A stretch of DNA of 64,000 nucleotides, from positions 62,001 to 126,000 of the forward strand of contig JBMGUZ010000005.1 in the NCBI GenBank assembly GCA_051530055.1. Direction: 5' to 3'. The notes under the pieces are model-generated. The model made no database searches, had not been told where the DNA came from, and saw only the letters and a program-made list of their open reading frames with translations. This stretch comes from Neoechinorhynchus agilis. Taxonomy: Eukaryota; Animalia; Acanthocephala. Below, piece by piece: positions 3,615 to 42,925 of this stretch (the stretch's first letter is position 1; every line of letters begins with the position of its first letter). Position numbers and translations under genes: made by a program.

Positions 3615-3960
3615 TGCTCTCATCATTTGCCTTTTTGTGTAAGTTTAGGTCACAATCTGACGACTGGGTTAAAAAGATGGATGTTTAACGAAGTGATCTT
3701 GAACGGCTTACCTAAAGTTGGTTGTGCTCGAAGTTCCATATAATCAAATCATCGTCCGTGCGAAGATAAACCACTGATTGGGTTTATACCAAAGGCTTGA
3801 GCCATCACGCTCTCGGCCTGAGGCACAGATCCAAATAAGTCGTCGAATTATACTAGGAGAAAGTGGGGTATTGAGATGAAATAATCTCGATCGAGTCATT
3901 AAACCTGATTACTCCTTTCAAACACTTTAGTGAAGGATCATTAAAGTAAACGAAGACGAA
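3590..3960 (+). mobile_element. Decayed 3' end of a LINE ORF2
   Basis: Inverted homologue of 55200-55640, whose translation (LNVLPKSWWCSKF) shares LPKSW with the 3' end of the LINE at ~10.28 kb. It is contiguous with LINE RT at 55.7-56.0 kb. Confidence 0.4.
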
Positions 3961-10418: not shown

Positions 10419-10439
10419 TTCTCTTTTAGTTTTTAGGGT

Positions 10440-13181: not shown

Positions 13182-13253
13182 AGCGATTTGCTGGCTGTCA
13201 ATCGCGAGGATTTCTCTGCATTCTTCATTGTAAAATAAAGAATCCTTAATTTA
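13178..13253 (-). repeat. 76-bp dispersed repeat overlapping the MARF1 stop codon, inverted partner of 5342-5417
   Basis: The MARF1 TGA (13179-13181) lies inside the inner end of the repeat; 69 of 76 bases match the partner. Confidence 0.85.
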
Positions 13254-13962
13254 GTAAAATGTCGTAGGCGGCAATTGGCTTTCACGTGAAGGCATTTAAG
13301 AGTAGTTTTTGATAATAAAACTCTTGTGGAACAAAACGACTTCATCATATACCCGGCCATTTCTGTAAAAAGCAATTCAAATACTCTTAACTTGGTCGTT
13401 AATTAAGCCGCCGCATTTCCTGGAACGTTTATTATTTCTACAAATAATGTTCTTTAGCTGTTGTGAAAAGACCCATCGACCGTAATTTGCTGCATCAAAC
13501 TATGGACTATAGCCCCTTACCGCGATTTCGTTATCCATCAAATTTTTGTGCCATAAAAACGCACTTGTTGTGTTTTATCCACTTTGACGATTACCGATTG
13601 CTAGAAAAACTGGTCGCCGATCTAATCAACGTGTTTCTTGGAAAAATAGGTAAATAATTAAGTGGCAACATTGTTTCATCTAGAAACGGATTACCCGATT
13701 GGTATAGTTTTATTCGTTATTGGCTTTTCTATACAAAAAAACCCGATTTATCTGATAATTTTAGAGTGTGGTTAGTTTATGAATTGTTATTGTGGCGTGG
13801 AAGGTTTTTTTGACAAATGGAAGAAAATCCTGGTACAAATCAGGGGCGCACTCGTGTTCTATAATCTCAAGATTTTGTGTCAAACAAGTAAACAGTTTAT
13901 AAATAAACAAACATGCAAAACAAATCATCAATAGCAGAGATCGAGATCGGAAAACGAATAAA

Positions 13963-15574
13963 TTACAGCGGATCAAGTACCTGCATCTTGGCGGTTCCCC
14001 TGTGGGCACGGTTGTTGTGGAGAATCGCAAGCTTGTAGAAGGTGGTAGTATAATTGCATGATGTGCACCGGACAGCTCCGCCTTGCAAATGCAATCCCAG
14101 ATGATCCACTTGATTCTCGAGTGCACAATCTATGCGCACTTTGCAAAAAGAGCAAATAATATTGTCTTTTTGAAGCTTCACGGTATTGGATTTCTTAAGA
14201 TGCGATTTCGAGAGCGTCTTCTTTTTGTTCGAATGAATGAAGACATCGACTTGTCGACTGATTTCCATTATTCCCTCATACCTCTCAGGGTAGTAGGCAG
14301 TGTAGATCCGGAAATAATCGAGGAACATTTGTTCAATTTGTTTTCCTTTTGAGTGTGCATTCACCTTTTGTCTCATTTCCAAAAGGCGGCCAGCGATGTG
14401 CTGCAAGAGTTGGTCGAAAGAGAGGTTTTCATAGAGAATAAATCCACACAGTGATTCAGTGTTCAAAATGGTCCCGAAAGTGCTCTCGTATAATTTTAAC
14501 GTGTTCATGGCTGTATTGTTTCCCAAATCATGATAAGACTCGTTCAATACGCCCACCGACTGATGAATCTGTGCGATGTGTTGGCGCATTGACTCCTGAC
14601 TTTCTCCGCGATAGAAGCATTTAGCGCATTTGAACTGCTTCAATGGATTGATCAAGGGCATTGAGGATGGAAGATTTGGTTCGCCAATATAAAAGCGTGG
14701 AACATCGATCGGCACTTTAGACTGGGCCACCAAATGGTTCAATTGGAACATGTCCTTATGACCTGACTCGTTTTCCATCTTTATAAACTTTTGCGGGTGC
14801 GATAGCTCGGCGGATCTATCTAGCGCGCCCGCACAAAACGGTTGACGTTTTCGTCGGTGGCTTGAGTGACGATGTCTCTCCAGGATGTACATATCGATTG
14901 TGGCCTTCGCTTCCTCCTCCGGTAAGACCTCTACAACCGCTTCGTGTGGCTCGTATTTTTTCCTGTTCCGAATGTGCTTTTGGACGTCCGACTTATAGTT
15001 CGCTCTTTGGCCACAAAATGAACATTTGAACGGTTTGAGGTTATGGTGTGCCGCCATGTGGATATAGAATTTGTCAGTTGAATAAGTCCCGAACTTGAAA
15101 CAGATATCGCACTCCATTCGACCCGCTCGTTGGCTCCTTGGACCCGGCAGTCGCACTTTCATGGACGACATCGCAGGCGTTGGCAGAACTGATTTAGCGC
15201 CCGTTGTGTCCCTACGATAGCAACCCTGTTCAAGTTTAAACCTTTCTTAAGGTGTACTCACATTATTCGACTCGTGATAGATACAACTCTAGGTTGGTCC
15301 TTATGCTTTCTGCTTTGATGCTTGCATACATCGGCCCGATATTTGGATTTGTACGGACAATAATGGCACTCATACAGTCGACATTGAATCTTTTGTCCAC
15401 TTGAGAGTGCGGACTCCGGTTTAATGGAGGTTTCCCTGGTTAAACGATTATCCGAGTACTCATTAGAAGATATGGCTAAAAGATCGAGTCAAATGTCACG
15501 CGAACTAGACACTTACCCAAGTACGCATTCAACTCAGCGTGGATTTGCTTGGGAGTAATCGCCGATAGTTCCAT
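13963..15574 (-). CDS. Multi-C2H2 zinc-finger protein, about 506 aa, 3 exons
   Basis: Exons 15517-15574, 15262-15475 and 13963-15211 join in frame across GT-AG introns of 41 nt (15476-15516) and 50 nt (15212-15261). Six CxxC..H fingers include YECHYC..KHQSRKH, FKCSFC, FKCAKC and VRCTSC. An extra 5' exon (~15760-15795) and a 3' exon (~13761-13865) are possible but weaker. Confidence 0.85.
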
Positions 15575-15598
15575 CTTTTTATAAGTATTCACCGCTAC

Positions 15599-15619
15599 CA
15601 ACAACAACAACAACAACAA
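15599..15619 (+). repeat. (CAA)7 microsatellite
   Basis: Read directly; it lies just upstream of the zinc-finger ATG. Confidence 0.9.
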
Positions 15620-16622
15620 CAGCTACAAATCAGAAACAAAAATTATATTCACAGCAGCAGCCGTCGTCGTCGGCCCAAGGTCCGTTATGATCGCAAACCT
15701 GATGTAATGCCGCCTGTGGCCCCCCATTGATTATTCATTCGGTGCCGCAGCCTTTGTACCTGCGTGTTCATCGAGTATTCATTGTTTTTGATCATTACAT
15801 CAACTAAGGCCGATCGATGCGCTCTACTTGTGCTGGACGCAACGGCAAACACGGACCCGCTAAGACGAATCTTTGTGAAATCCTAGAAGTATTTAAAGCA
15901 CAATGCCCTTGAATAAGACAAATTGGCAATTACCTTGACCAGGACCCTTCTTGTAACATGGATATATCAAATTATGAACTAATGAAGCGCTTCTATTCTT
16001 TGAAAAGCATCCTTAATTACATTCGTAATTTTTTTTGAAGAATCCGATTTCAGCCTTTGGTCAGTTTACCTAAAAATACCTACAAACGGAAGCAAAAATC
16101 CCTTCGGTCAATTTGATCGTCCAAAGACGTCAAGTCCTGTAACTCGACAAAGAATGCTTAAAATACAAGTTGGTGGATTTTCGATTAATCTCACAACCGC
16201 GTGTTATTCTTTTCGATTGTCCTTAGTCAATTTAAGCAGTTAAAAACAAATTAAGAAGTAATACGTCGAGGCAAATGCCACATTTGAGTGATATGCCGTT
16301 TTTGGACCGCAATCGTTTCTATGTTATTGGTTGTGAAATTGGAATAAAATTTTAAACAATTAGACGGCAATCATTTCTATTTTCCAAGCTGTAGAGTCTG
16401 AATAGAATTTAAAAAATCGAACAGCATGTTCCGGGTAATAATAACACATTTGATTAATGCACTCGTGTACGTCGAGTAAAATTAATTTATTTGGAAGCAA
16501 AGGTATTGTTGGAGATTAATGAAACTTGAAGATTAAATCCAGCAATCAAAGGTAAAAAAGCTAAAAAGAAGGAAATTATTGCGGGTCAGAATATTACATA
16601 TCTACCAGCGAGTCGGTCTCAC

Positions 16623-17581
16623 AGCTAAAGTTATAAAACCTTTTCGTAAATGCAAGACTTGGTTTTTGAAAATATGAATTCATTTCCTTCAGGAATGTCG
16701 ATGCTTCGCGGTCACATTGACATCTTCACTGTCCGTTTTCATCCCGAATTGTGGAATTGAAACAAACAGAAATCTTCATCGATGGATACAAAAAATTTTC
16801 TTTAATTTTTTTCGGTGCCCTCTGAAGTGTCCGAGCGGACACTGTACTCGTCATTGGGCTTTGGCCTGAGGCCGCAACTTACTGTAAATTGTTTCGAGAT
16901 AGACGTGAAAGTTAGAAAGCTGTTTTTCGCAGTGAGAGTTCGTTAGCGAAAATCGATACTCTTTTAATGTTCTTTGAAAAGTGAGCCTTACCTTAACTCA
17001 CGGAGAAAAACTTCTTGCGCTCTTCGCTATCTATGAACTCGTCAATAAACACCTTACCTTGAAAGTTGCGACGAATCCAACAGAGCTTAAAAAAAACTAA
17101 AATTATAATTAATTTTTACCTTTCAATACAAGTATATTTGAATCTTTGCTAAAAACCAGAGGGAGTGAAATATAAAAGTCGTTAAAATAGTCAAGAGTTT
17201 CCATCGCAAATTCTACTTAGTATACAACGCCTATGCTTTTTCGAGGCAATAAAAAGAGTTAACGATATTCTTCATGTCATTTCAGGCCAATGATCTTTCA
17301 AGGAAAATAACTACAAAACCGCTTTTTAGACATATCAGAATATTTCACAACGGAACACCGAAGCTTGAAAGGCTGTTTCTACAGTCGTTGGACAGCATTT
17401 TATTAAAAATACATGGAGACTTCTTGTTCGAAGAATGAAATGATGGATGAGCAATAAAAAGCTCAGGAAAATATTATTGCTACCATTAAAATTCGAATTC
17501 GATGCCCTAAAGTGTTGAATGGAGGTTTCGAGCATCGTCGTATCCGAATTTAATGGCAATAATTTAAGTGATTTTATGATC
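16623..17581 (+). repeat. Duplicated block A, copy 1
   Basis: Starts AGCTAAAGTTATAAAACC and ends GTGATTTTATGATC. It recurs at 23483, 40940 (tail only), 48054 and 58987. Confidence 0.9.
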
Positions 17582-17906
17582 TTTTTGCAATGCAAATTCT
17601 CTCTTTTAAGAATCGCTTCTACGGAACCTCATCCTATTTCTCTTCTACTCTTATCATTTGCAACTTCGTGTACACGCTTACCAACGCTCTCACTAATTCA
17701 AATTTAGAACATTGGAGGATTGGCTACCACAAATAAAGAAATAGTACGATATAAAAATCAAGTGCTCCCAAATATTTGTATGATTGTACAAGTGCTAATG
17801 AGCCAAGGCCTTGTTCGAATATGAAACATTTTTAATTTCACGAACAGTTACAAAACTATATAATAATAACACATTTTATTAATAATCGATGCTTAACTTT
17901 GAACGG

Positions 17907-18752
17907 TCAGAAAAATATCCTTCTGAAGTAGTTGAATGCCGCAACGGCCACTTGGTAGACGGCATCAATAATATTCTTTATTGTTGTCAATCCATTCCAA
18001 GGTTTCGATACGATATTCGGCTCCGTTTGCGTGCTACTTTCTTGCAAATCTATTATCTTGCACGTCGCTGGGCGTACATAACGACCTTGAGGTTCTTTTG
18101 GTTCTACTTCACTAAATAAAGTGAAAAACTCGCTGCATTTTTCGAATTCCAACGACGACTCATTAAATATATCGGTTGATTCCTGATAATCGAGAAACGA
18201 TTCGTAGTAATCTTCGTTTCCATTCCAAACGTGATTAAAGGCCGGATTCTCACAATAGAGAAGAGGTGAGCCATATTCGTCCATTCCTGATCGTGAATCG
18301 TAATAATCAAAAGTCACGTTCTCGAAACCTGGTGGAGTTGAGAAGTATCCTTCGTTTTCGGGCTCGTAATCGTAATAAGAAAATGAGCAATTTTCAAAAC
18401 CTGGTGGAGGTAAGCAATATTCTTCATTTCCAATCGATGAATGATTATTACTGAAGTCATCTATGCTTGGTGGTGACTCATTGAAAATAAAAGTGAAATC
18501 ATCAAAGCCGGGCGGAGGTGCACAATTATTTATAGTATTATCTGCGTTTTCCAAAATTTTTTCGACTTCTCGATCGAGGTAAATATCATCATCGAAGGGA
18601 TTATATATTTGGTGACCTTGGTGAATAATGTTGAACGTTGGTGGATCTGGATGACTGAAACTATTGGGTTGACCAGAGATGTGGTTCCGCAGGAATTGTG
18701 CGCTTTCCTCGATTGGTGGTGCCCTTATCCCGAATGGTTGTCTTGTCGTCAT
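17907..18752 (-). CDS. Unrecognised 281-aa acidic/Pro-rich protein with three PPGF motifs, copy 1
   Basis: Intact ATG-to-TGA ORF with motifs APPPGFDD, LPPPGFEN and STPPGFEN and a hydrophobic/amphipathic C-terminus. An intact paralogue lies at 49373-50218. Confidence 0.7.
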   Translation of the reverse strand: MTTRQPFGIRAPPIEESAQFLRNHISGQPNSFSHPDPPTFNIIHQGHQIYNPFDDDIYLDREVEKILENADNTINNCAPPPGFDDFTFIFNESPPSIDDFSNNHSSIGNEEYCLPPPGFENCSFSYYDYEPENEGYFSTPPGFENVTFDYYDSRSGMDEYGSPLLYCENPAFNHVWNGNEDYYESFLDYQESTDIFNESSLEFEKCSEFFTLFSEVEPKEPQGRYVRPATCKIIDLQESSTQTEPNIVSKPWNGLTTIKNIIDAVYQVAVAAFNYFRRIFF

Positions 18753-20220
18753 ACTTCAAATCTGTAGCTCTGAACTGTCTAAAATTAGGAAACTACGGTT
18801 AGTCGAGATTTTGGAGGCTTTACTTTCTTTATCAGGTTTTCTAATGATCCACGAAAAAGTTCAGTTACTTAACAGCAAAATGTTTCTATAAACCTGACGC
18901 AGCGCTTCGAATGGCAGGTGATTTTCAAATCATTCCAAATCAAAACTAATGCAATTTCTGCAAATTTTATGACATTTCATATCACTAAAACTCCGCTGAA
19001 TTGCAACATTCTGATTCGAAAATTCTTTACTGTATCGCTTGCGACACTTATCAAGACATTACAACGGATATCACAAACGTATTGATTGTCTACGGTTGAA
19101 ACACCGATACGTGTTAAAGAAGTCGATTTTTATCTGTCGATTGAACCGTAAAATTAATGACACACAACTAATGAGGCGTGAAAATTCGTTTCGGAACAAG
19201 CGACTTAGTTGTTGTTAATACCTTACAGTTACTTTAGCATTAAAATTCGATGCTTTTTACAAAGACAGGTAATTAGAGCATGCTGATTGGCTACTTTTCA
19301 TTGAGGAAACCATACACGTGATGTTCCGAAATATGTGGAGGGAAAAACGTTTGTGCTAATACCTCGCTATCTATTGATCGATTAACCCATTTCATCAAAT
19401 TTTACTTCCAAAAATACCCCAAAAATACAGATTCAATTCGAGATCTCATTATGTAAATTTGTCCGAAATTTCCACCCTCGATTTAATAGAAAAATTTCTT
19501 GCTTGGATTTCATTAGATTTTTGAAAGGATGCAACGCGGACGAAAATGGTCTCGAAACCGTTATCCAATATCTCTTCTCTTTTGAAGCATTTAATTTAAT
19601 TGAAACCGTTTTGTGGTCATTGAACGAAGAAAAAGATTTGAATTCAGCCCCCCTGCAGGTAAAATGCAAATATGGACGCTAATTTTGAACTTGCGGAATC
19701 GAAAACAATTCCACCAAGCTCAAAGGCCTCAATCTTATAATTCCAACTTAAAAAATGAATGAAATAGTAGGAAAAGAAGCACTAAAAACGACGATGATAG
19801 TTTCACCAATATGCTAAAATGTTTATTGTGCCAAAAAATTAATAGTATCAATACTCTCAGTGTGCATTTCGGACCATTGCATATCAATGGGAGATACAAA
19901 AGCAATCGAGAGAATTGCTATAAAATATTAAATTAAAAGCTATCTTGTGAACGTCATAGTATGAATCCAAAAGACGATATCCGTGTAGATTCTCCCAAGC
20001 TCAGGGTAGAAATGAAGTATCGAAATATAATTACACCTATGAACAAATCAACATCTAAGGAGGAAATGGATAAGCTTATTGAGATTAAATTGCCAAAAGA
20101 TGAATGTCAAATTCAAGAGTAAAGTAACTATCAAAAAGAAAGTGTCCCTTCCAATTAATAAAAGTATCCATAAAAATCAATAGGTTGTAGATTCTATCTC
20201 TTGATAAAAAAAACAGCAAT

Positions 20221-25290: not shown

Positions 25291-26770
25291 TTTATTTTTT
25301 CTTTACATTACATTGGGCCCATTACATGTCATCCGGACGCTGGCAGCGTTCCATCGCTGGACCGCCAGACTCAAGTTTTGTCGCAAGAAAGTGATTGACT
25401 GCGGCTCCGTCGCATTCGCGATACGTCGCCCCAGTTCATTCACGAATTCCGCTGCGGCCTTTTCAAATGCCCCGTAAGTCTCTACTCCGAAAGGCAGGAA
25501 TAAAAACTGAGAGGCTAACTCATGATACTTCGCGGTCCTACGTTCCTCCGCTCTCGTTGCCGCGGCTTCTGCGCCTAATTTAGCGGTCGTTATATTGCAG
25601 TTTGCCAGCGTATCGACGCATGTTGCGTCCCATATAAGGCATCTGCCACGTGATCGGGGAAAGATCGTTACCTCGTCAGGACGTTTCCCGTCTGGGCGGC
25701 AGAGATTTTTTGGCTCCAGGATGCAGGGCACATGAATCGATCTCAGCGCTCGACTTATGATAGCATTGATTTCAGCATGGCGGGGAAAACGTCCTGGGGA
25801 CAGTTTACATGGGAGTCCCTTGGTGTCCACTGTGACACCACATCGACATTTATGAGCGACGCAAATGTCCATTCCGAATCTGAGACAGTAAGCAATACGG
25901 AAGGTCTCATCATCCAGCAAAGTGCCCAAATTTGAGGATGGTAGAGCATCAAGCCAGGCTCCAGATTCTTTGGTCGAACAAGCAGCGAGACGGATCCCAG
26001 CCATTTTATCCATCTGGTCTTGTAATTGAGATTGAACCCGATGAACGAGTGGAGAATCCAACGCTTGCTGTTTGTTGCTTTCTCCAGGTATCTGTGTTTG
26101 CCAGCTTAATGTTGTCCAATTTCACAAAAGCTCGATCGAAATGCTCCGCGTTGACCTCATTAAAAATATTAGTTGAGTACTTAAGACTAGCACAAATGGA
26201 GGCAAGGAAAGCCGGTAAAGTGACATCTTTAGTCTGTAGTAGTCCGGAACCCCCACTTAATGTCGGTAATGTAGCTTGTCTCCATGATGTATCGTCAGAG
26301 GCGATGTTAAGCGTTTTCTCCAGCTCATCGCAAAATAGGCAGTCCAATTTATCGAGGTCGTCCGTGTTGTCGAAGGCAGGAACAGTCCTTAGTTTGTGCA
26401 GGAGCTTAGGCATGAAGAGGCAGTTCTTTATCAAGAAGATTGCTTCATGGCTCTTCAAATCCGATGTTCTCTTGCATATCAGCTTTAGCTCTGAAGCGGT
26501 CATTTCAATATCCTTTGGAAGATTCTCCTTCATCACGCAAGATCCCAATAGACGAAGCTTACTAAGATTAATGGTTTCTATTCCTAGTGCAACCGATGAA
26601 AACTCATCCAATATAATTGGCTCGTTTTTTCCCTTCATGTTTAGCAGCAGAATTTGGCACTTTGCGAAATTGAGTTGCAACCCCAGTTCTTTGGTTTTTT
26701 CTACGAGTATTTTAAAATCGTCCAGAACTATTGCTGCTACGTTTGTCGTTGTCGGACTTTACATCGTTGC
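25290..26770 (-). mobile_element. CRE-clade family 2, 5'-truncated, with complete RLE domain
   Basis: LGLQLNFAKC, HEAIFLIKNCLFMPKL, ESGAWLDALPSSNLGTLLD, HKCRCG..RHAEIN, DGKRPD..LIWDATCVDT and GVETYG..LSLAVQR, then an A-rich tail. One frameshift lies near 26.03 kb. Confidence 0.9.
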
Positions 26771-27384
26771 CGAAAACTAACTGTTAGTGAACTTTTCAAA
26801 CTTTCAGCGCTTGCTTTATTCTCAAAAATATGAATTTTGGACGCATTATCCATTTTTTATTTTTTAAAAACCTATTGTTAGTCGTCGTATGCGCTTTTGA
26901 AGAACTTCGGAATCGTTTTTAGATTCTAATAACCAAGAAATAAGCGTTTACGTTTTGGTTTTTAATTTTTTTGTCAGTTCAAACCTTAAAATAATTATGT
27001 TCTTTACGTAACATTCAGGCGCATTGCTTTTGGCTAATTTCAAAGCGATAATCGATGTTTTATTCTTTGAATGCCGAATAAGTTTAAAGGGTAAATACGG
27101 ACCGCTATGCCAAATTCGACGTTTCGGGTTTTATGGACTTTTTCTTCCCATTTACACCAGCAAATAAAATAGAACAACAGTGCAATATTCTTCGTCCGTT
27201 TAACGATCCAAAATTAATGGTGAAATCTTTTGAACCAGACAAATAATTTATTGCTTCCGGTTTTTTTATCGTTATGTTTGTTTATGGTGGAAATTGTGAA
27301 GGAGTTTTATTAAATCCCATAAAAGGAGCTCCGTTCAAAGGCCTAGATTTTTGTATCTACACGACGAAAGCTGAATCATTAGTT

Positions 27385-27840
27385 AGGTTTATCCAAGCCG
27401 TCCGAAAGCTTCTGGAGTCATTTATTCTGCAGTTCAGCAAATAGTCATCGTGTTCCCGCTTTGAACATTTAGCGAATCCGAAGTCGGTTACCTTTACTTA
27501 GCCGTTTTCTTTAACTAAAATATTCTCAGCTTTAATATCCCAGTGGGCAACCTTAATTCGATGTAAATAATCGAAAACGAGGACAATTTGAGCTCTGATA
27601 AATCTATTTTATTCTTCACTAAATCATCGTTTTGCACGCAAATGTTCATACAAATCTCCGGTTTGTATTAAATTCATCACAATGTACAAATGGCCGTTAT
27701 ACTTATACGATCCCTAGAAATCCACAATATTTGAAATGAATATATTACTCAGCATTGCCTCTTCATTAACTGTTCGCTTTGTTTGTCTAGTTTGGAAGAG
27801 ATGGAATTTTTCATGTACTTTTACTGCAAAATGATCGTGT
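27385..27840 (-). pseudogene. PKA-catalytic-subunit-like (AGC) Ser/Thr kinase pseudogene
   Basis: [84 protein letters not shown] parallels PKA ([30 protein letters not shown]). It has at least four in-frame stops, HRD changed to HWD, and a frameshift. Confidence 0.85.
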
Positions 27841-28504
27841 TGTGAGATCCATCAGAAACCTTCTTTGGATGGTCATTGAATGAAGATGGAACCCAGACAC
27901 CCTTCAAAAGAATCAATTTTTCGTTTCGTCCGAGGGACGAAAACAAAAATGAAAGAATGCTCAAGAAGTGGATTTTTATATCAACATTTAATTTTAGTTA
28001 ATTTTTGTGATCTCGCTGATTTGTTGACTTGCTTATGCGAGTTAATAAAATACCGAGATGTTCAACGTATTATGGAAAGTAGTCTTGGATAAATTAAAGG
28101 TTAGTCCAGTTTTCTATACGATTATTTATTAGTCCAACTCAAATCGATTAACTTGCTAATTCGTTGCAATCGTGGTGTTAATATATATTGATTTATTGTG
28201 TTAATATGATTATCCATTTATCCAAATATAATAAGATGCGCCAAAATTTATTTTTTGAATTTTTCGATTTACGTTTTTGAAGACTCATGGGACCTTATTC
28301 TTAACGCCGCCAAACTCAGACCGATTATCACCTTTGACTTTACCGATCACATTTGAGGATTTCGTTTTAATGGACTAGCAGGCAAATTGATCAGAAAATG
28401 CCAGTTATCATTCAATTAACCGATTTTGAGAGGTAGAGATATAAAAGTAAATTCGAGTTTGGCGATGTTTTCCCCGGATTGTTGATGGTGTTGATCATTT
28501 ATTT

Positions 28505-28544
28505 TAAAATATTTCGTAAGCATTTTGCTTACCCTTTCAGCTAT
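28505..28544 (-). ncRNA. Degenerate minimal hammerhead ribozyme motif in the PLE1 3' region
   Basis: CUGAAAG-G-GUAAGCA-AAA-UGCUUAC-GAAA-UA-UU. Helix II is a perfect 7 bp, but the core reads AAG instead of AGA. Confidence 0.45.
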
Positions 28545-29278
28545 ATCTACAAATTAAGCTACAAGTCAGAATTTGACTATAGGCGTGGATCCGCGGGTTC
28601 GCCAAGCGCCGTGACCTACATATAAGCTGCGGTGATCTAACGTTTTGTTTTGTCAAGGAGTTTCGGAATTACTAGCATATGATTCGCTTTCTTACGCTCC
28701 ATGGTTACATTCCTATGATGTATATTGCCTCCATTACCAATCTCCTCCGTAAATTAGCCTCAGGCTGTATTATTGATGCTCGTCGGAAGTCCACACGGTG
28801 TTTTTCCTTCTCCTGATGATTGGGGATCGCGGAGGAACCATCAAACCTCCTGCACGCCTGTTTGTGTTGCGCTAGTCTTTTGGACAATCCTTGCATCGTT
28901 TGCCCCACATAGATAGGATCACATTCGATGCATGGGATTTTATATACTCCTTTGTGGCATTCTCTACTGTTCTTCTTCTTGAGCAATCCCGTGGTAGTTA
29001 GACCTTTGTTGTACGAGATTCTTAGGTTCGGATATTTCCTCTTCAGACTATTTAGCTTCTTACTTGTTGTATCGCTCACGAACTTAAGAGATCCATACAT
29101 CTTGGGTTCGGCTGTCTTGGTTTCTTTTACTCATTTTGGACTGTTGATTCGTTGCGTGCCCCGCTTGATTATCAACCATTTCGATATTCTTGATTGAGTG
29201 TGCTCACTTTTGACGTTATTTGTTTGGCTCGTTGGAGGTAAGAAGTTACTGTGGATAGTTTGTGTTGCATAGGCTGGT

Positions 29279-31010
29279 AACTGGTCCATACTGGGGGTCC
29301 CCAAGTTAGGTTTATGGTACATCAACGTTTCGACTGTACCTCTTTTTGCCCGATCCATGAAGGAGATGTGACCATTTTCCTCTTGCTCAACTGACCATTG
29401 AATATCACTACTTCGCTAATGACTGGTCCATACTGGGAGTCCCGAAGGTAAGTTAGGTTTATGGTACATCAACGTTTCGACTGTGCTTCTTTTTGGCCGA
29501 TACATGAAAGAGATGTGACCATTTTCCTCTTGCTCAACCTACCATTGAATATCACTACTTCGCTAATGACTGGTCCATACTGGGAGTCCCGAAGGTAAGT
29601 TAGGTTTATGGTACATCAACGTTTCGACTGTGCTTCTTTTTGGCCGATCCATGAAAGAGATGTGACCATTTTCCTCTTTCTCGACTGACCATTGAATATC
29701 ACTACTTCGCTAATGACTGGTCCATACTGGGAGTCCCGAAGGTAAGTTAGGTTTATGGTACATCAACGTTTCGACTGTGCTTCTTTTTGGCCGATCCATG
29801 AAAGAGATGTGACCATTTTCCTCTTGCTCAACTGACCATTGAATATCACTACTTCGCTAATGACTGGTCCATACTGGGAGTCCCGAAGGTAAGTTAGGTT
29901 TATGGTACATCAACGTTTCGACTGTGCTTCTTTTTGGCCGATCCATGAAAGAGATGTGACCATTTTCTTCTTGCTCAACCTACCATTGAATATCACTACT
30001 TCGCTAATGACTGGTCCATACTGGGAGTCCCGAAGGTAAGTTAGGTTTATGGTACATCAACGTTTCGACTGTGCTTCTTTTTGCCCGATCCATGAAAGAG
30101 ATGTGACCATTTTCCTCTTGCTCAACTGACCATTGAATATCACTACTTCGCTAATGACTGGTCCATACTGGGAGTCCCGAAGGTAAGTTAGGTTTATGGT
30201 ACATCAACGTTTCGACTGTGCCTCTTTTTGCCCGATCCATGAAAGAGATGTGACCATTTTCCTCTTTCTCGACTGACCATTGAATATCACTACTTCGCTA
30301 ATGACTGGTCCATACTGGGAGTCCCGAAGGTAAGTTAGGTTTATGGTACATCAACGTTTCGACTGTGCTTCTTTTTGGCCGATCCATGAAAGAGATGTGA
30401 CCATTTTCCTCTTGCTCAACTTACCATTGAATATCACTACTTCGCTAATGACTGGTCCATACTGGGAGTCCCGAAGGTAAGTTAGGTTTATGGTACATCA
30501 ACGTTTCGACTGTGCTTCTTTTTGGCCGATACATGAAAGAGATGTGACCATTTTCCTCTTTCTCGACTGACCATTGAATATCACTACTTCGCTAATGACT
30601 GGTCCATACTGGGAGTCCCGAAGGTTAGTTAGGTTTATGGTACATCAACGTTTCGACTGTGCCTCTTTTTGCCCGATCCATGAAAGAGATGTGACCATTT
30701 TTCTCTTTCTCGACTGACCATTGAATATCACCACTTACTTCGCTGGTGACTGGTCTATACTGGGGGTCCCCAAGTTAGGCATATGGTACATCACCGTTTC
30801 GACTGTACCTCTTTTTGATCGATCCATAAAGGAGATGTGACCATTTTCCTCTTGCTCAACTGACCATTGAATATCACTACTTCGCTAATGACTGGTCCAT
30901 ACTGGGAGTCCCGAGGGTAAGTTAGGTTTATGGTACATCGACGTTTCGACTGTACCTATTTTTGCCCGATCCACCTCTTGCTCAACTGACCATTGAATAT
31001 CGCTACTTCA
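29279..31010. repeat. Tandem array of about 12 units; eight consecutive periods are exactly 147 bp
   Basis: Unit starts (GACTGGTCC) at 29421, 29568, 29715, 29862, 30009, 30156, 30303, 30450, 30597, 30748 and 30890, plus one at ~29279. The outer 142-bp units lack a 5-bp insertion. Confidence 0.97.
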
Positions 31011-32202
31011 TTTAAATCTTCCTTAAGTCTGTTATGGTCGATATTCTGGTTCGTAATGATAAACGCATCATCCACATATCTTCTCTTCAACCTATGATGT
31101 ATCGTTTGGAGGTTAGAAACTTGTCCTCCCATTTGCGCATATAAAGGTCTGCCAGGACTGGTGCTGGAGGTGATCCCATAGCCATACCATCATACTGTTC
31201 ATAATATTTGTGATTGAATTCGAATGACGTTTTACACGTACACCAACTTAGGAGGTCCAGTCCTGGTTCAGGACAATTCTGTTCTAGTAAATAAGCAGCC
31301 ATATTCATTGTCTCCACTAATGAGATGTTAGTAGATCGAGAATTAACGCCCGCTGTGAAAAATTGATGTTCGTGATGTTGTCCCTGTCTGATGAAAGCAG
31401 CGAAAGCTGGGCTATCGGCAATATACGAGGTCGCAGGTGGTTGAGATTGCCGAAGTATACTATTTATTTTCGTTGCCAATTTGGGATTGAACGAATCATA
31501 TGAAGCGATGATCTGACGGAATTGTAAACTCGGCTTATGTATTTTGGGGGATAAATATAAAGACGCGCTGGATGCGAATGTGGATTTCGTTTGCTGATGA
31601 AAGAGATTCGATATGCGCGACGAATTGACTAATTTTCTTAACATCGAGTTCAGTTCCGTCTCCCTCTTCCTTGTAGGGTCATAATGGAGTTCCTTGAATT
31701 TTTAAGACGAGAGTAGATTGTGGGCAGCTATATTGTATTCATCTAAATCGACGACGACTGTGGCTCTTCTTTTGTCTGATTTTAGTATGGCAATTGACTC
31801 GATTTTTTTATGCTGGCAAGAATCTCGTTCGCCCCTTTCTGTAATCTTCTGTTGTGGTGCCTTACGGTGATATCATATCCACTAATAGTACACAATTCAT
31901 TTGGTCAATCCTTGATTAGTAGCTCCGTATCCACGCTTATCTCTTTATCTTTCAGATTGTTAGCTGCTACATAGTCTGGACCTTTGTTCAATAACGTTTT
32001 ATCTTCTGCTCTGAAAATATAACCAGAGTAGTTGACGAAGTATTCTCTCCTCGCAGTCTGTTTGGGTCTCAATCGTTCTTATTTCTTTTGGTGTCTTGCT
32101 TTAAGATTACTAAGCGCTGCTTGATTGTTCAGCCGCATGTTTTATCTGGTGATGATTGTTTGATAGACAATCCGACTGAAAAATTGATTTTATTAAAATC
32201 TC

Positions 32203-32233
32203 AAGCTTTCGCCGTCCAACGACTTCTTCAGGG
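32203..32233 (-). ncRNA. Minimal hammerhead ribozyme motif with weak helix I
   Basis: CUGAAGA-A-GUCGU-UGG-ACGGC-GAAA-GC-UU, with a palindromic AAGCUU helix III, followed by AATAAA. Confidence 0.5.
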
Positions 32234-32609
32234 TGTAATCTGCAATGCGAGTGGAGTGGAATGGAGGTTCACAGGAGATTCATGACGGCAGACAACTCAT
32301 CCTTCTGGTTAATGAGTGTCCTACCGACCGACCGATGCCCGCTAGAGTCCTTCAGTCTATATCCTGCTACGTGTGTTGACGCAAACACTTAGCCACTTGA
32401 TGTCCTCTGAATTAAGGGTGTTGATGAGATGTTCCCATATTTTTAGCGATGATTGTTTGAGAGAAATTTGCTTAGAATTTGGCATCAATAGGGTTGCCTT
32501 GACCGTTGCCCATTGTGAAAACAAAAAAACGTATAGACAAAATCCAAAAATCATTATACTTAACCAGTTTTTTCTTGGCTAGGACACATCTAATAAACGA
32601 TGGGATCGT

Positions 32610-32681
32610 TATTGCAATACCTCTACCACCGACGACACCGATGCCGTCCCCGAGCGAAGCGGGGGGGTCCCTTCTATCTAG
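32610..32681 (+). mobile_element. Helitron/Helentron-type terminal hairpin
   Basis: CCCCG-AGCGAAG-CGGGG hairpin at 32648-32664, with CTAG 13 nt downstream at 32678-32681. The base after CTAG is C rather than the expected T. Confidence 0.35.
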
Positions 32682-32899
32682 CGTTTAAATATTGCTGGTG
32701 CTGAACTTATACTGAAGAGTAATCGGGTGTATCTAAAGAATCCTCTATTATTGGCCACCGTGAGAAATCGTCTTGATTGGTTCTCAACAGGCAGTTGTAG
32801 ATATGCATCCTTAAGATCCGGTAGCGAATACTGTTATCCGCCTGATATCTTACAAATTATTTCGCCCACGTTGGTAAAATATAACTATTTGTCGATAGG

Positions 32900-33835
32900 A
32901 GAGATAATTGAAATTAAGATTTTTATTGGATATTTCGATCCACTATCTCGGATCTTCTTCAGCGATCTAAAACACAGGGATTCTCAATTCACGCGTCACA
33001 TAACATCCGGTGGGAGTCGCATCCTTAATTTGAAATCAGATTTATTGCCCTCGAACGTTTCGAACCTATTTATATATAAGGATTCGATGATAATTCGATC
33101 GAAACGACAATCGTTGCAAACTAGTGTTGTAGCGGCACTAAAATCAATAGTGTGCCCTCTGTTTTTTGCATGGGCCACCACTGCGGAACTAATATCCGTC
33201 TTGCGAACAACTGATGATTCGTGCTCCTTCATCCGTCGGGTGAAATTGTTGGTCTGCCCCACATAGACCTGTTCGCAACCGGAGCACGGGATTTTGTAGG
33301 CCGCACCAGATGACTGTTGGCCATTCTTGGGACATATCAATCCGTGTAGATTGCGTTCCACTCTCCTGGCCTCACATCCTGATTTTATGATGCGCTCCAT
33401 AGCAAGATACGAATGATCATCAGGGAATGGCAGTTCAACGTAGATCTCTTCCTTTTTAGACTTTTCTCCCCATTGAAGGTTCGACAAGATGGAGAGAATA
33501 ACCATATCGGCCTGATATGTACTTTAGGTAACCAATCTCCTCGTTGCACAACTTGGCGTTGCTACAATGTGTAAGAGCACGGTGGATGAGTGACCTAATC
33601 CTCGAAATTTTTTGTATTTGCGAGGTTGGGCTGATGTCCATGGCACAAGGGCCACTGGTATACCTCTCTTTCGGTACACGCTGGTCGTGTAGTTTCCACT
33701 GGCTAATCGGTATATCCACACATCCAGGAACGGAAACTTACCATGGTCCTCCTCCTCGATCGTCCACTGAATATTGTCGTCCCTTCCATTCAGTTCATGT
33801 TTAAGGCGATTCATATTAGTCTCTGAAAAAATAAC
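32900..33835 (-). mobile_element. Penelope-like element 2, 5'-truncated (RT thumb plus GIY-YIG)
   Basis: IQWTIEEEDHGKFPFLDV..VYRK, IRSLIHRALTHCS and AAYKIPCSGCEQVYVGQT..RMKEH..IIESLYI. Confidence 0.9.
32925..32966 (-). ncRNA. Minimal type I hammerhead ribozyme in the PLE2 3' end
   Basis: AUCG-CUGAAGA-A-GAUCC-GAGAUAGU-GGAUC-GAAA-UA-UC-CAAU. The core is intact, helix II is 5 bp, helix III is palindromic (AUAU) and the cleavage triplet is AUC. It lies ~30 nt after the GIY-YIG stop and just before AATAAA. Confidence 0.7.
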
Positions 33836-34340
33836 TGTCGACACAAAGGTGAGGGTTTATTGTTACTCTGAAATCTCCACAAATGCGTATTCTGCCGTTT
33901 GATTTGCGGGTGATGACAAGAGGTGCTGCCCAATCAATCGTGTCTTTATTGAAATCAACTTTCTCTGATACCTTATTGTCCACTTGCCGCTGCAGCTCCT
34001 GCTCGACTTGATCCCTCATAGTTAGTGGAATTCGACGGCTATTCCAACATTTTGGTATTGCCCCCCCGGAATTAATCTCAATGATACTTCAATGTTTCAC
34101 GCCGGAGATATCGTCTTTTCGAATACCTTCTGATGCGCATCCCAGATTTCCTTTAGTCATCCGCATTTTTGCTAGTGATTGCTAAGATATCTATGCGAAC
34201 ATTATGATAACGCACACAATCGGGCCAGGGTATCTGGAAGGCGTCTACCCATGGCCGTCCGAAAAGACTATGACTACCCTTTTCGACTATCCTCGCTTCC
34301 AATAGTTTGCATTCTCCGTAGAACTTAACCGTAACCATGT
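33836..34340 (-). mobile_element. Ty3/Gypsy fragment (protease C-terminus to RT N-terminus)
   Basis: SLFGRPWVDAF and DWAAPLVITRKSNGRIRICGDFRVTINP, related to the 39.5-39.9 kb element. Confidence 0.85.
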
Positions 34341-34344
34341 ATCC

Positions 34345-34832
34345 AAGCTGTCCGAAAACTTCTGGAGCCATTTATTCTGCAGTTCCACAAATAGTCATCA
34401 TATTCCCGCTTTGAACATTTAGCGAATCCGAAGTCGGTTACTTTTACTTAGCCGTTACCTTGGACTAAAATATTCTCAGGCTTGATATCCCTGTGAGCAA
34501 CCTTAATCTGATGTAAATAATCAAAAACGAGGACAATTTGAGCTACGCGAATGTTCATACAAATCTCCGGTTTGTATTAAATTCATCACAATGTACAAAT
34601 TGCCGTTATACTTATACGATCCCTAGAAATCCACAAAATTTTAAAGAAATATATTACTCGGCATTGCCTTTTCGTTAACTGTTCGCTTTGTTTGTCTAGT
34701 TTGGAAGAGATGGAGTTTTTCAAAAATATTTACGACAAAATGATCGTGATTTTTGGTAGTAGCAACAACTTGACCAAGGCAGAAATTAAGAGATGTGAGA
34801 TACATCAAAGTTGAAGATTTCAGTATCTTCAT
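34345..34832 (-). pseudogene. Second PKA-like kinase pseudogene copy, cut by the Gypsy fragment
   Basis: Nucleotide paralogue of 27385-27830. It reads LGQVV..HDHFVVNIFEK, VTDFGFAK and TICGTAE*MAPEVFGQLGY. Confidence 0.8.
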
Positions 34833-35364
34833 TATCCCCTGGTACAGTCAAATTCGGTTTATATTTTTTGCTTCGTTAATTGTATTAATTTTCGTTCTCA
34901 ACCATTGACCTCGAGCTTATGATTTACTGATGGCAAAGTATAGATTTCGCCCAGCACTCCGAGAACGAGAGAACCATCTTTGTCTTCGATTTCACCCGTT
35001 TTGTCGAGCTTTCAGTATGAAATGCTGAGAAATGTAAGTTTCTTCAGTTTTGAAAGAAGATGAATCATCGCGGCATTAAACTTTTGCTGCCATGATGGAG
35101 GCAGATCCCTTCTCAATTTGTAGATTCGATTCGGTCAATATATTGTTTCTGTGCAGTCGTTCGTAACTTCCAAATTGAATACATTTTATCGAACAAAGTT
35201 TAAGGCATCGCTCTCGGCATTCATTTAAGCGTTCTAAACAGTTCGATTTCTCAATCATTCGGATTCCCCACATTTGCCTGTAGTTTTTGGGCAAACAAGA
35301 CGTTTATGGTTTTCTGCGTTAATTAGGTAATTGACAATCACGTTGCTTGCATGATCATTTATTG

Positions 35365-37789: not shown

Positions 37790-40700
37790 CTCATCACAAA
37801 ATCTTTTATACCAAGGAAGTTTGCGTCAAAGCAAGCCAATATGTTCTGTAGATCAGCGGCTGTGGCCGATCTGAATAACGAACACAGGTTGCGCCGGAGC
37901 TTACCGATGAGGATTTTACTATCATTTCCGATGAATACAGTTTCCAGCCAATTATATATTTTGCTCTTTATACTCTTTGAATATCGATTCGGACCACACA
38001 CATATAGATAGCGTGTGCTAGTTGGAAGACGGACTTCGAATAATAAACAAGTTGTTGTTGTATGGCTACCACAACTGGCGACGAGAGTGGTTTATTAAGA
38101 ACAAACCACAACTGGCGACGAGAGTGGTTTATTAAGAACAATTCTCCAATAACAGCAACAATTATTAGAACAGTTGCTTCCGGACGTAAGCAAGTTTGAG
38201 CTACGCCTTAAGCTTGAGTATACGCTGTAAGAATATAGTCAATCTAAAGTAAGCAGTATCCTAACCAATTTAAGCAACTTGTCCACTCTACTTAATGATA
38301 ATGTAATTTATATCATGTAAGTGAATAGAACTGAATATTGTAAAATATGGTCAAATAAATGAGTCTCTAGCCAATTCGAACACGACTGCCAGGAAGGATA
38401 ATGTGCGAGCAACGGGATTCCGGCGCTTTCTTGAGGAAAAAGAAAGCCGGCGAAGCTACAAACAACAAATCGGGTTCCACTTTGCTGCTCAAAATGTCAC
38501 CGATCGACTAATGATGAGAAACATGTTCCTATCATGGATTGGGCCCTCGGCATACCAACTACTGTCAAGTCTAAATACGGGAAAAGATGTCAACAATTAT
38601 GATTACCATGAATTAATAGAATTGCTGGATACCCATCACTCACGCCCAATCCATATCGTCGCTGCGCGTTTCGCATTTAGTCAATACGAAATGAAAAATG
38701 GTCAATCTTATGCATCATGGATTGTAGACCTACGAGAAGAAGCTGGATTGTGTCAATTTTTCAATAAATCCATCAATTCGGAAAAAGATGCGATCGATGA
38801 CCGGATCAGAGACCAGATAGCGATTGGAACGCCACACGATGAGGTGAGGAACAAAATTTTGCAAATGGCAGCACCTTCTTTGAGCGGCGTGATGAAGATT
38901 TGTGAAACGTTTGAAATGATAAAGAATACGTCGTGGAGGAAGCAGTATGTAGGTCAAGAACTTCCGAATGATTCGTACACAGCAAAATATATGCAAGACG
39001 GAAAGTTTTTTGAAATTGACATGATTCGAAAACGGCATAATACACGTGATCAGAGGGAGAAAAGACCTAAACAACGCTGTAAAAGATGTGGAATAGAGCA
39101 CGAAATATCAGTGTCCAGCAAAGAACAAGAGTTGTTTCAAACGCTAAAGGACGGGTCATTTCAGATCGTGTTGCCGATCAAGGTACCCAGTAGATCAAAT
39201 TGAAGAACTAAATACGATAATGGATGTAAACCACACAACGATAGTGGAGAATCAGATTCCAAGAATAAATGTCCAAATAAATGGGATACAAATAACGATG
39301 GAGTATGATACTGGTGCCAGTGTATCGGTGTTGACTATGACATATTGGCGTAGAATAGGCCAGCCAACTTTGAATGCTGCCAAACCCCTCAAGGCGTATG
39401 GTGGCAAACGGTTAGTAACCCTGGGAAAATGCAATATCAATGCGAGTTTGGGAGAAAGACAAAAGCAGTTAGAAGTCATGGTGGTACGAAACGGGAAGTA
39501 TAGTCTATTTGGGCGTCCTTGGATAGACGTTTTCGAAGTTCCTTGGCCTGATGTCGTATGCCACAGGCTTGATAGCCAGCAAACAGAATCAGATATCGAT
39601 TCGGTCGTTACCTCAATCGATCAGCTACTATTGAAGAATAAGTCGATTTTCGATGAATCGAATACTCCTGTCAATAATACCGAAATATCACTAGCAATAG
39701 CACCCAATGCCACACCGAGAAGATGTGCAAGTCGAAGAATTCCACTGACATTGAAGAACAAAGTAGAAAACGAGTTGATAAGGCAGTTAGAATGAGATGT
39801 GCTGGAGAAAGTGGATCTACGTAAAGACTCTATCGATTGGGCTGCGCCGATTGTGATTGCAAGGAAACCAGTGGTGATATCAGGATATGCGGAGACTTTA
39901 GAGTAACAATTAATCCACATCTAACAATCGATAACTACGCCATTCCTACATGGGAAGAGATCGTCAACCAAATAGCGGGAGGTGAGTAGTATTCAAGGCT
40001 CGATTTGAAAGATGCTTATCTACAACTACCTGCCAACGCGGACTCTAGGAAATACTTGACAATCTCGACCCATCGAGGATTTTTCCGATACAAACGACTG
40101 CCATTTGGAATCAGCTCAGCTCCGGCAGTTTTTCAACTTAGTGAGTGGTTGGCCCCTCCGGAACTACATAAATATTCGTCTCGCAGACAAGAGCTTTCAG
40201 TAGAGGACGGAGTCATCCTATGGTTGCAACGCCTTATAATCGCCCAGGCATTGAGGAATAAAGCACTTGATGTCTTACATACTGGACACCCCGGGATAAC
40301 AACAATGAAAGACCTAGCAAGGTATTATTGTTGGTGGCCATCCGTACGAGAGGACATCGAGCACAAGTTGGGAACGTGCGTGAACTGGCAGAGCAGGAGA
40401 GCAGATGCAGCAGAAACTCCGATGTACCAATGGGATGTGCCAGAGGAACCGTGGACCCAAATCCATTTGGATTTTGCGGGATCAATCAATGGACAATCGT
40501 TTCTAGTGCTTATAGACACGTATAGCCACTGGCCGGAGATTTTTCCAATACACTCAACATCTGCATTCGAAACCATCGACAAATTAAGATCCGTTTTTGC
40601 ACGATTCGGTGTCCCAGCCGAAATCATATCTGACAATGGCCCACCCTTTCAGTCCGCGCAATTTAAACAGCTTTGTTCAACAAATCGGATAAGGCATATC

Positions 40701-40943
40701 CGTTCATCTCCCTACCATCCTCAAACCAACGGTTTGGTAGAGAGATTCATCAGAACCTTCAAGAGACGAGTACACATCAAAAACGACTGGTATAAAAATA
40801 TGCTCTCAATTCACCAATTTCTTTTAACTTACCGGAATACACCACACAAAACTAGCCAAAAAGCACCAGCTGAGACATTACTTGGACGGCGGTTGAAGAC
40901 CGTATTTGATCGTATACGTCCGAATTTACGATCGACTATAAGC
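37790..40943 (+). mobile_element. Ty3/Gypsy LTR retrotransposon, internally deleted and 3'-truncated
   Basis: An LTR-like end (AATAAA, then ...CA at ~38074) precedes PBS TGGCGACGAG. Gag at 38403-39203; protease YDTGAS; RT DWAAP..CGDF..SRLDLKDAYLQ..RLPFG; then a jump straight to integrase (HTGHPG..YCWWP..IHLDFAG..SDNGPPF..SPYHPQTNGLVERF). RNase H and the 3' LTR are absent. The LTR start is uncertain. Confidence 0.9.
38068..38141 (+). repeat. 37-bp tandem duplication containing the primer-binding site
   Basis: ACCACAACTGGCGACGAGAGTGGTTTATTAAGAACAA occurs twice. TGGCGACGAG is complementary to the 3' end of metazoan tRNA-Ser(GCT) as recalled. Confidence 0.85.
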
Positions 40944-42925
40944 TTTTAGACATATTAGAATATTTCACAACGGAACACCAAAGCTTGAAAGGCTGTTTCT
41001 ACGATCGTTGGACAGCATTTTATTAAAAACGATAAAGACTTCTTATTCGAAGAATGAAATGATGGATGAGCAATAGAAAGCTCAGGAAAATATTATTGCT
41101 ACCATCAAAATTCGAATTCGGTGCCCTAAAGTGTTGAATGGAGGCTTCGAGCATCTTCGTATCCGAATTTTATGGCAATACTTTAAGTGATTTAATGATC
41201 AAGAATTACCAAACGATCCGGTCATCTTTAAAAAATAATTTATATGAAACATTTTTCTTACAAAATGTAAATAGTTTTTATTCGACGTTTTTTAGGTTGA
41301 CTATGGTATAAAATATTGAAAATATTACAATATTGTTTGTGTAACTTTAAAAGACTGTAAAAATTATACGATCACAATTATAGTTGCAAATGATTAAAAG
41401 GTATCAAATGATAAATTAAGATGTAGAACAAAGTAATTCTAATTTACAGCTTTGTCGTGCTTTGAGAACGGCGTTACCTCTGCATAACAAAACGTGCCGG
41501 AAGGTCAAGTAATTCAAAAATTAAATTTTTGTAGAACCGATGGAAAATCTTGTGTCCCCTTATCAAAGATATTGCAATTATTTTTTTTTGAAGTTTGGTC
41601 AGCCGGTAACTTTTATTCAGTTTCTATGTTGGGCCTTTTTACGGTTTATATCGGTGGGCTGCGCGCCCAAGGAAAATTATCAGTCGTGAAAAGGGCTACA
41701 CATAGATATTTTATTTTATATTTGAGCCCTGATTTTGATCACGACTGTTTAAAACGAAACTCAAATCAACAGATGAATTAATTTACTTTTTAAAATATTT
41801 TCAATTTTCCATGGTATTTATCATAAGCACTTACTTTGAATAACTACAGTCGTAGAGATCAATAAATCGTTGTTTTACAATCTTGTTTTACTTTAATCGA
41901 TTAGAAAATAGTTTTACGCAACCAATTTAATTTGACAAAATAGAATTTCCAAATCTGACGTTTGATTTGAAGAATGCTTGCCTTCATTGGATCTTATATG
42001 AAGCAGAATTGCAGATAAATATAAATCCATATTGCATCTTTGTTCAGGGAATAAACCGACTGATCGCTCAAAACGGTTATGGGTATCGGGAAATCGAGAA
42101 GTTTCAACGACCAACAGAATCAGCTGGTGGAAGTTCGAGAAAGAGGGAAATGAATAGTGATGCCTTAACGGTCCTCAGGATCCCGTTCGTTAGAGCAAAA
42201 TCCAAGAGTGGCATCAGGAGGCTCAAAAAGAGACAGGTTTTGAGATTCGATCAGCTCACAGGAGCCCTCCGGTATTACTCCGTATTCTAACAAGGAATAC
42301 GGACAACTCAAAAAGCATCCGGCAAGCAATGTCCAAGGACGATTGACGCCAAAAATGCCACTTTGCACGAGGAGTAATGCCAACTATTAGACTAAATGTG
42401 TTCAGTGCGCACAAGAACAGATTCGAGTCGTCTACATTGGGAAGATGGACGTATTTGTGAACAGTTTCGTAATGCTTTACCTAAAGAATGCCACTTCCTT
42501 TTCAGTTGGTTTCGCTGCTCAGTACCTTCAAGATGCATTAACCCGCTTGGTCGATCGACAGTGAGAGTGAGGGCTCAAATTCTAGATCAGATATCCATGG
42601 GACACGATCTTATTTTATTTGAATTTGGACAGTTCGATTTAAAGACTAAAGTGGTTTTCAATGACAAGACTATCATTAATTTCAAACCATCAAATAAAAT
42701 CTAATCTGTATAAAATTAACTGAAATGAATAATATTATGTCCAAGGCCCCCAATGATAACTTGGTCACCTTTTCATGTCTAAGGAAACAGAGACCCTCCA
42801 AATTAACAAATTTTCGTATGAGGTTATCAATAATCAGTGAATTGCAAGGAAACATGACCTTAAGTAAATTTTAAAAAGCAGAATTTTACAAATATCTTGC
42901 AAATGAAAATCTAGAAAGAGATGTC
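40940..42925 (+). repeat. Block A tail, block C and block B (recombined duplicon)
   Basis: Matches 24220-25260, then 20380-21190. It lacks the CRE family 2 insertion seen after block C elsewhere. Confidence 0.85.

Follow-up and report, generated by a model that had tools for sequence, protein, structure and literature searches.

A 147-bp tandem array amplified from reverse transcriptase coding sequence within a decayed Penelope-like element

When a segment of a transposable element is found in many head-to-tail copies inside the very element from which it came, it is natural to ask whether we are seeing the birth of a satellite or only the local growth of repeats in a decaying copy. This question is raised by an array of 147-bp units in a 64,000-nucleotide stretch of Neoechinorhynchus agilis DNA (hereafter the window), which lies on JBMGUZ010000005.1, an unplaced contig of 135.7 kb in assembly GCA_051530055.1 (record coordinates equal window coordinates plus 62000). 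The original prediction saw in this array an early stage of satellite formation and homogenisation, perhaps serving as a source of small RNAs. We instead consider it likely that the array is a local, probably neutral tandem amplification within one dead copy of a Penelope-like element (PLE), nested in a fragment of an LTR retrotransposon on a contig rich in transposable elements (TEs). An earlier suggestion that the locus is subtelomeric was withdrawn, given that the contig carrying the window is unplaced.

The parent element, which we call PLE1, and the elements around it are laid out as follows.

31905 to 32072, minus strand: N-terminal PLE-type segment of PLE1, NYSGYIFRAEDKTLLNKGPDY
31055 to 31863, minus strand: reverse transcriptase (RT) core of PLE1, with a 185-aa ORF at 31644-31087, YVDD near 31060, and a frameshift between RT motif 4 and YVDD
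28705 to 29280, minus strand: the part of PLE1 downstream of the array, with the RT thumb-like segment YQPMQHKLSTVTSYLQRAKQ, more frameshifts, and an intact 131-aa GIY-YIG ORF at 29100-28705
32996 to 33844, minus strand: PLE2, a 5'-truncated member of another PLE family, in which the homologous segment (NIQWTIEEEDHGKFPFLD..VYRKRGIPVALVPWTSAQP) is present only once
32684 to 34308, minus strand: LTR-retrotransposon pol fragments, with PR and the RT N-terminus at 34308-33978 and RT at 32815-32684

Read 5' to 3' on the minus strand, PLE1 presents its N-terminal segment, the RT-core ORF, YVDD, the array, the thumb-like segment and the GIY-YIG ORF, and its 5' end falls between 32072 and 32684. The original prediction had placed the array between the RT core and the GIY-YIG domain of a single element, and the two ORFs indeed flank it on the same strand. 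The segment NYSGYIFRAEDKTLLNKGPDY is presumably the PLE N-terminal motif. Searching a representative library of 1.84 billion proteins with the RT-core ORF gave 2039 relatives at E<=1e-3 (best 2.8e-23), and the conceptual translation of the C-terminal part of PLE1 matches the relative P0153, which carries both RVT_1 and GIY-YIG, over 80% of the query (E=2e-11). Tblastn with full-length relatives places the RT (31863-31055) and endonuclease collinearly on the minus strand. Pfam RVT_1 does not match the RT-core ORF of PLE1 itself, and does match P0153; the 131-aa GIY-YIG ORF scores 21.5 bits against Pfam GIY-YIG (E=2.9e-4), slightly under the 22.6-bit cut-off. With a PLE/TERT-like RT and a downstream GIY-YIG on the same strand both found, the parent can be classed from its sequence as Penelope-like. 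A 5.8-billion-protein collection yielded no match to the RT core, and exact-protein look-ups with the ORFs of PLE1, PLE2 and their neighbours returned none on record.

The PLE1 copy is decayed; frameshifts occur between RT motif 4 and YVDD as well as between LNEV and SDIQW, and others follow downstream of the array. Since PLE2 interrupts the pol fragments of the LTR retrotransposon and PLE1 comes after, the elements are nested. PLE1 lies about 100-600 bp beyond the short stretch in which the LTR RT fragment resumes, and the two PLE insertions are clustered in one pol gene. Directly 3' of PLE1, another dispersed repeat occupies 27409-28341. A direct repeat of about 410 bp (27390-27839 versus 34340-34748, 90-92% identity, 6.95 kb apart) brackets the whole PLE1/PLE2/LTR-pol block, and a common LTR-retrotransposon region is the probable source of both copies.

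The array itself is well defined. Tandem Repeats Finder, which had been proposed as a check, recovers one array at 29303-30973 with a period of 147, 11.4 copies, 94% matches and a score of 2942. We set the unit starts by anchoring on the motif CTGGTCCATACTGGG (starts at 29281, 29423, 29570, 29717, 29864, 30011, 30158, 30305, 30452, 30599, 30750 and 30892), and aligned the resulting units with MAFFT. The full extent is 29281-31010, or about 1.7 kb in 12 head-to-tail units, and the 64-kb window holds no other tandem array of such size. The units are numbered along the plus strand, such that PLE1, on the minus strand, reads from U12 to U1.

29281 to 31010, minus strand: tandem array U1-U12, with units of 142, 147 (eight times), 151, 142 and about 119 bp
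29281 to 29422, minus strand: U1, the 142-bp edge unit facing GIY-YIG, with a frameshifting 5-bp deletion in common with U11
29423 to 30598, minus strand: homogenised core U2-U9, each unit exactly 147 bp, mean pairwise divergence 2.3%, mosaic variants
30599 to 30749, minus strand: U10, 151 bp owing to a 4-bp insertion; TCACCAGC is preserved at its border with U11, and no stop codon occurs there
30750 to 30891, minus strand: U11, 142 bp, sister of U1; at 9.6%, it is further from the core than any other unit
30892 to 31010 (end approximate), minus strand: U12, the edge unit facing the RT, which is the original copy and adjoins the YVDD region without interruption

Successive periods measured by the same anchoring are therefore 142, 147 eight times, 151 and 142, which bears out the earlier count of eight inner periods of exactly 147 bp (U2-U9). 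Two features were missing from that account, namely the 151-bp U10 with its 4-bp insertion and a 21-bp deletion that is private to U12, a unit which the alignment shows to be of the 147 type at the site of the length difference. Each unit is a PLE RT segment of the form SDIQW..FMD..YHKPN..WTS, and one minus-strand frame of the 147-bp unit translates as SSDIQWSVEQEENGHISFMDRPKRSTVETLMYHKPNLPSGLPVWTSH followed by a stop. This segment aligns to the ..IKFT.E.E....FLD....VYRKPT....W.S..P.. region of other PLEs, and no Pfam family matches it. Unit translation and flanks thus agree with the proposal that an RT coding segment was amplified in place within its parent element. The array is closed in all six frames, also as predicted, with a longest open stretch of 54 aa.

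Such an array is far beyond chance and is real as a feature of the sequence. It might nevertheless be asked whether the unit number, or even the array as a whole, was produced when noisy long reads were wrongly assembled. Repeats are abundant on the contig, which is unplaced and carries a 6.4-kb segment that recurs with 100% identity in two other assembly records, such that haplotig or duplicate problems exist nearby. The number of units could be wrong for these reasons. However, assembly stutter would not yield 12 units that are told apart by indels and by variants with phylogenetic structure, together with a relic junction, and we regard an assembly artefact as a very doubtful explanation.

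How the first extra copy arose can be read at the unit borders. In the minus-strand reading, U1 passes into unique flank as GGACCAGTTACCAGC/CTATGC, and this flank reads GGACCAG TTACCAGC CTATGC. Where U11 meets U10 the sequence is GACCAG TCACCAGC GAAGTA, while the remaining junctions read GGACCAG TCATTAGC GAAGTAG. The original prediction described a short CATTAGC junction between units. That sequence does lie at the unit borders, but it is not a separate junction piece; rather, it descends from the downstream flank TTACCAGC, of which it is a mutated copy, and is not filler DNA. From the flank TTACCAGC and the junction TCACCAGC it follows that the unit ends in ..TGG ACC AGT TAC CAG C, and since TCACCAGC survives at one junction, the first duplication was in frame, 49 codons long and free of stops (..WTS[Y/H]QR SSDIQW..). 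The 147-bp length is simply the distance between two breakpoints, which happens to equal 49 codons. The two original breakpoints (TTTAAAT/GAAGTAG and ACCAGC/CTATGC) show no microhomology, which points to a non-homologous first duplication. A CC>TT change later converted the junction codon CAG to TAG, and because TAG is now present in 10 of the 11 junctions, it must have spread by homogenisation.

An in-frame duplication that was at first free of stops invites the thought that the array is a property of a PLE family, in the sense that the array or a shorter version of it was carried by a transposing master element, or was made by template jumping of the RT at insertion. There are precedents for TEs with internal tandem repeats, including Ogre LTR retrotransposons and Tetris foldback elements (PMC9659126, PMC4079207). 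Against this stands the frameshift between LNEV and SDIQW, which falls in the opening bases of the unit and does not vary from unit to unit; thus PLE1 was probably already non-coding when amplification began, as would be the template. In addition, a 49-aa duplication in the fingers/thumb region of the RT would probably inactivate the enzyme. On this evidence we judge a family-level origin to be quite improbable.

The next issue is which unit length came first. The outer units had been described as retaining a 142-bp ancestral form, with the inner units lengthened by a 5-bp insertion. Two 142-bp units, U1 and U11, are indeed present, but comparison with P0153 reverses the polarity. In the 147-bp form (AACTTACCTTCGGG at the indel site), one frame holds every conserved motif and runs into the unique downstream flank as ..PVWTSYQPMQHKLSTVTSYLQRAKQ, whereas in the 142-bp form this frame is lost between YHKPN and WTS. 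Aligned to P0153 by BLASTP, the 147-bp form scores 60.8 bits without gaps from YHKPNLPSGLPVWTSYQPMQHKL to YRKPTQTDNVIPMSSNHPMQHKL, with PMQHKL identical, compared with 37.4 bits for the 142-bp read-through, whose alignment ends at KP. The spacing of nine residues from YxK to W/F-x-S is common to PLE2 (YRKRGIPVALVPWTS), which served as the outgroup within the window for the polarity of this indel, and to many PLEs in the library. U12, the original copy, is of the 147 type at the indel site. Finally, the unit phylogeny groups U1 and U11 as a clade, defined by the 5-bp deletion together with G16, C27 and G87. Because the P0153 alignment, the YxK spacing, the type of U12 and the U1/U11 clade all agree, the 142-bp form is derived: the 147-bp form is ancestral, and the shorter one carries a frameshifting 5-bp deletion in two sister units. 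Since U1 and U11 sit on opposite sides of the homogenised block, their placement requires a further exchange or conversion event (one at the minimum), whose course is not uniquely reconstructable.

This reversal also changes the meaning of a splice donor-like motif. Eight plus-strand copies of AAGGTAAGT are present, one per unit from U2 to U9, and the 64-kb window has no others. It had been predicted that the 5-bp insertion created AG/GTAAGT on this strand, and the motif is present in U2-U9 as stated. Since the 147-bp form is ancestral, however, AG/GTAAGT is not insertion-made, but is the antisense of ancestral N-L-P-S codons; specifically, the eight perfect copies of AAG/GTAAGT, found only in the array, are antisense to AAC TTA CCT TCG.

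The pattern of divergence among units indicates how the array subsequently changed. U2-U9 differ from each other by a mean of 2.3%, and from this core U1 differs by 5.2%, U10 by 5.4%, U12 by 8.7% and U11 by 9.6%. Divergent edges are the classic edge effect of arrays that evolve by unequal exchange. The edge units have A63, C65 and C74 in common, U7 and U10 are intermediate (G63, C65, C74), and the other units carry G63 and T65, plus G74 in all except U6, which suggests that the variant now expanded in the interior was derived stepwise. Variants are also held in common by units that are not adjacent, and among U2-U10 the four-gamete test fails at six pairs of informative sites; with all four gametes present, either segments were exchanged between units or the same variants recurred. 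The recurrence of variants in non-adjacent units had been noticed originally, and the claim of homogenisation likewise holds, given a centre at 2.3% against edges at 5-10%, the mosaic variants and the TAG codon at 10 of 11 junctions. A homogenised, mosaic centre with divergent edges fits unequal exchange and gene conversion. We also evaluated a three-unit higher-order repeat of 441 bp; the similarity at lag 3 was suggestive and not significant (permutation p=0.065), and this candidate was set aside.

These observations are compatible with a simple series of events. A stretch of 147 bp (49 codons) of RT sequence, which begins immediately ahead of SDIQW and ends at the first base of the codon that follows WTSYQ, would have been duplicated once by a non-homologous route, in a PLE1 copy that was probably frameshifted already. 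Once two copies were present, unequal exchange between sister chromatids or alleles, replication slippage and gene conversion could have expanded and homogenised the array. An early lineage of units would have gained the 5-bp deletion, with U1 and U11 as its survivors, and the CC>TT change that made the junction codon TAG could then have come to occupy 10 of 11 junctions. Amplification of a derived 147-bp variant (G63, T65, G74) inside the array may then have given U2-U9. We assume that the array is neutral throughout.

It is appropriate to question this assumption, because a function could be proposed for the array in nucleosome positioning, as a small-RNA source directed against the PLE family, or as a supply of plus-strand splice donors for a host transcript. 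The unit length equals that of the nucleosome core, 147 bp, and the eight perfect AAG/GTAAGT motifs on the plus strand could be viewed as donors. The monomer, however, lacks a WW periodicity of about 10 bp (its spectral power at 9.5-11 bp is equalled by 57% of shuffles) and is not AT-rich (43.5% GC versus 40.3% for the window), so the agreement with nucleosome-core length is unsupported. The donor-like motif, as discussed above, is the antisense of ancestral N-L-P-S codons, and the array offers no ORF longer than 54 aa. The small-RNA reading likewise finds no support in the sequence, given that the array contains no inverted repeats, that RNA folding of the monomer does not exceed that of its shuffles (z = +0.44 on one strand and -0.06 on the other), and that no Rfam family, including hammerhead, matches either strand, whether across the window at gathering scores or within 27000-35000 at E<=1. 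We therefore consider a functional array to be extremely improbable. The same searches eliminated a hammerhead-bearing retrozyme derived from a PLE, with no Rfam match on either strand and folding z scores near zero. A pLTR or partial tandem ends, often with a hammerhead ribozyme, are frequent in PLEs and not obligatory, and at PLE1 the 27000-35000 interval gave no Rfam match of this kind at E<=1.

There remains the possibility raised at the outset, namely that this locus is the seed or a member of a nascent or established satellite, whose 147-bp monomer is present in other and possibly much larger arrays. The array displays concerted evolution and an edge effect, as satellites do, and transitions from TEs to satellites are well documented, including cases that began in the ORFs of retroelements such as L1 ORF2 and CR1 ORF2 (PMC9659126, PMC4079207). 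Specifically, LINE-1 ORF2 gave rise to PROsat in Phodopus and Pvc20 in Phoca, and CR1 ORF2/3'UTR to the HinfI repeat of chicken (PMC9659126). Like the PLE1 array, these satellites have head-to-tail monomers that come from the ORF of an RT-encoding retroelement and no longer code. In contrast, they are abundant genome-wide families derived from LINEs, whereas here a single 1.7-kb array in 64 kb still lies inside its parent PLE copy with both original flanks. A blastn search of the window (word size 7) with the monomer and both PLE1 flanks returned self matches only, and an invariant exact 29-mer of the monomer had no match in metagenome contigs. Protein collections searched with the C-terminal conceptual translation that includes the unit gave two distant matches only (28-31% identity) and no unit-like proteins. 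Within this window and these collections, the sequence gives the satellite-birth reading, like the nucleosome and small-RNA readings, no support, and we believe a genuine satellite to be rather unlikely.

The array can also be compared with other known systems. The Ogre 3'UTR, from which PisTR-A derives, and the Tetris foldback element of Drosophila virilis (PMC9659126, PMC4079207) resemble the PLE1 array in holding a tandem repeat within a TE, which has been proposed as the first step on the route from TE to satellite. Those repeats, however, reside in non-coding parts of many copies of a family, whereas the PLE1 array was built from coding sequence in a single decayed copy. Non-LTR retrozymes are hammerhead-bearing tandem repeats of PLE origin (PMC4209133; bioRxiv 10.64898/2026.07.22.740005), and they are like the PLE1 array in their PLE ancestry and in a size of about 150-400 bp. 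They differ in that they originate from the pLTR and carry a hammerhead, whereas the PLE1 unit originates from the RT ORF and has no Rfam match. The closest likeness is to ordinary minisatellite expansion, which also produces a homogenised centre, older and divergent edges, mosaic variants and a spreading variant comparable to the TAG junction. We see no substantial difference between the two, and this is the mechanism proposed here.

If the array is only local, which is most likely, the locus offers a clean textbook case of array growth and homogenisation and no new biology. Its value would rest on how legible it still is, with the original flanks, a relic junction, the edge effect and the sweep of a stop codon through the units all in view. 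If the monomer should prove abundant elsewhere, the locus would instead document the stepwise origin of a satellite from PLE coding sequence. We see a slim chance that the RT-derived 147-bp monomer seeds a genuine satellite family in this genome, or that a PLE variant bearing the array spreads it. If true, this would be the first satellite traced to PLE coding sequence, with the parent element and a relic junction still intact; PLEs are absent among the known satellite sources in one review (PMC9659126).

Several other features of the window were recorded along the way. An intronless 913-aa ORF at 10440-13181 on the plus strand (called as 884 aa) encodes a MARF1-like protein with OST-HTH/LOTUS domains; among named proteins, its sole relative comes from the trematode Echinostoma caproni, with 35% identity across 14% of the query. 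It belongs to a 6.4-kb MARF1-like/zinc-finger segment (10175-16618) that is 100% identical on CM121343.1 and JBMGUZ010000065.1; similarity to both stops at 16618, and neither has a counterpart of the array region. Those two copies lack a 2.58-kb insertion at 7594-10174 with LINE-like ORFs (7582-9772), and the gene model for the MARF1-like protein is extended on JBMGUZ010000005.1 (1129 residues versus 884). A haplotig could account for this difference, and so could a very recent segmental duplication in which the TE insertion is polymorphic.

Recent repeats form a mosaic in the window. Large duplications internal to it, with 95-99.6% identity, pair 17189-19597 with 48651-51052 and 25696-27381 with 60926-62611, and within duplications of this identity the segment 16623-17189 has copies at 23483, 48054 and 58987. 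The duplicated material includes two copies of a 281-aa ORF (17907-18752 and 49373-50218), which has no Pfam family on record, as well as identical LINE-like fragments. A tandem duplication of 248 bp x2 with 95% identity lies at 3126-3615. On the plus strand, 38403-40949 holds the fairly intact interior of an LTR retrotransposon with gag, protease and RT/integrase ORFs, which is a member of the family represented by the PLE-hosting fragments, and just upstream of its gag-like ORF is a perfect 37 bp x2 tandem repeat at 38068-38141.
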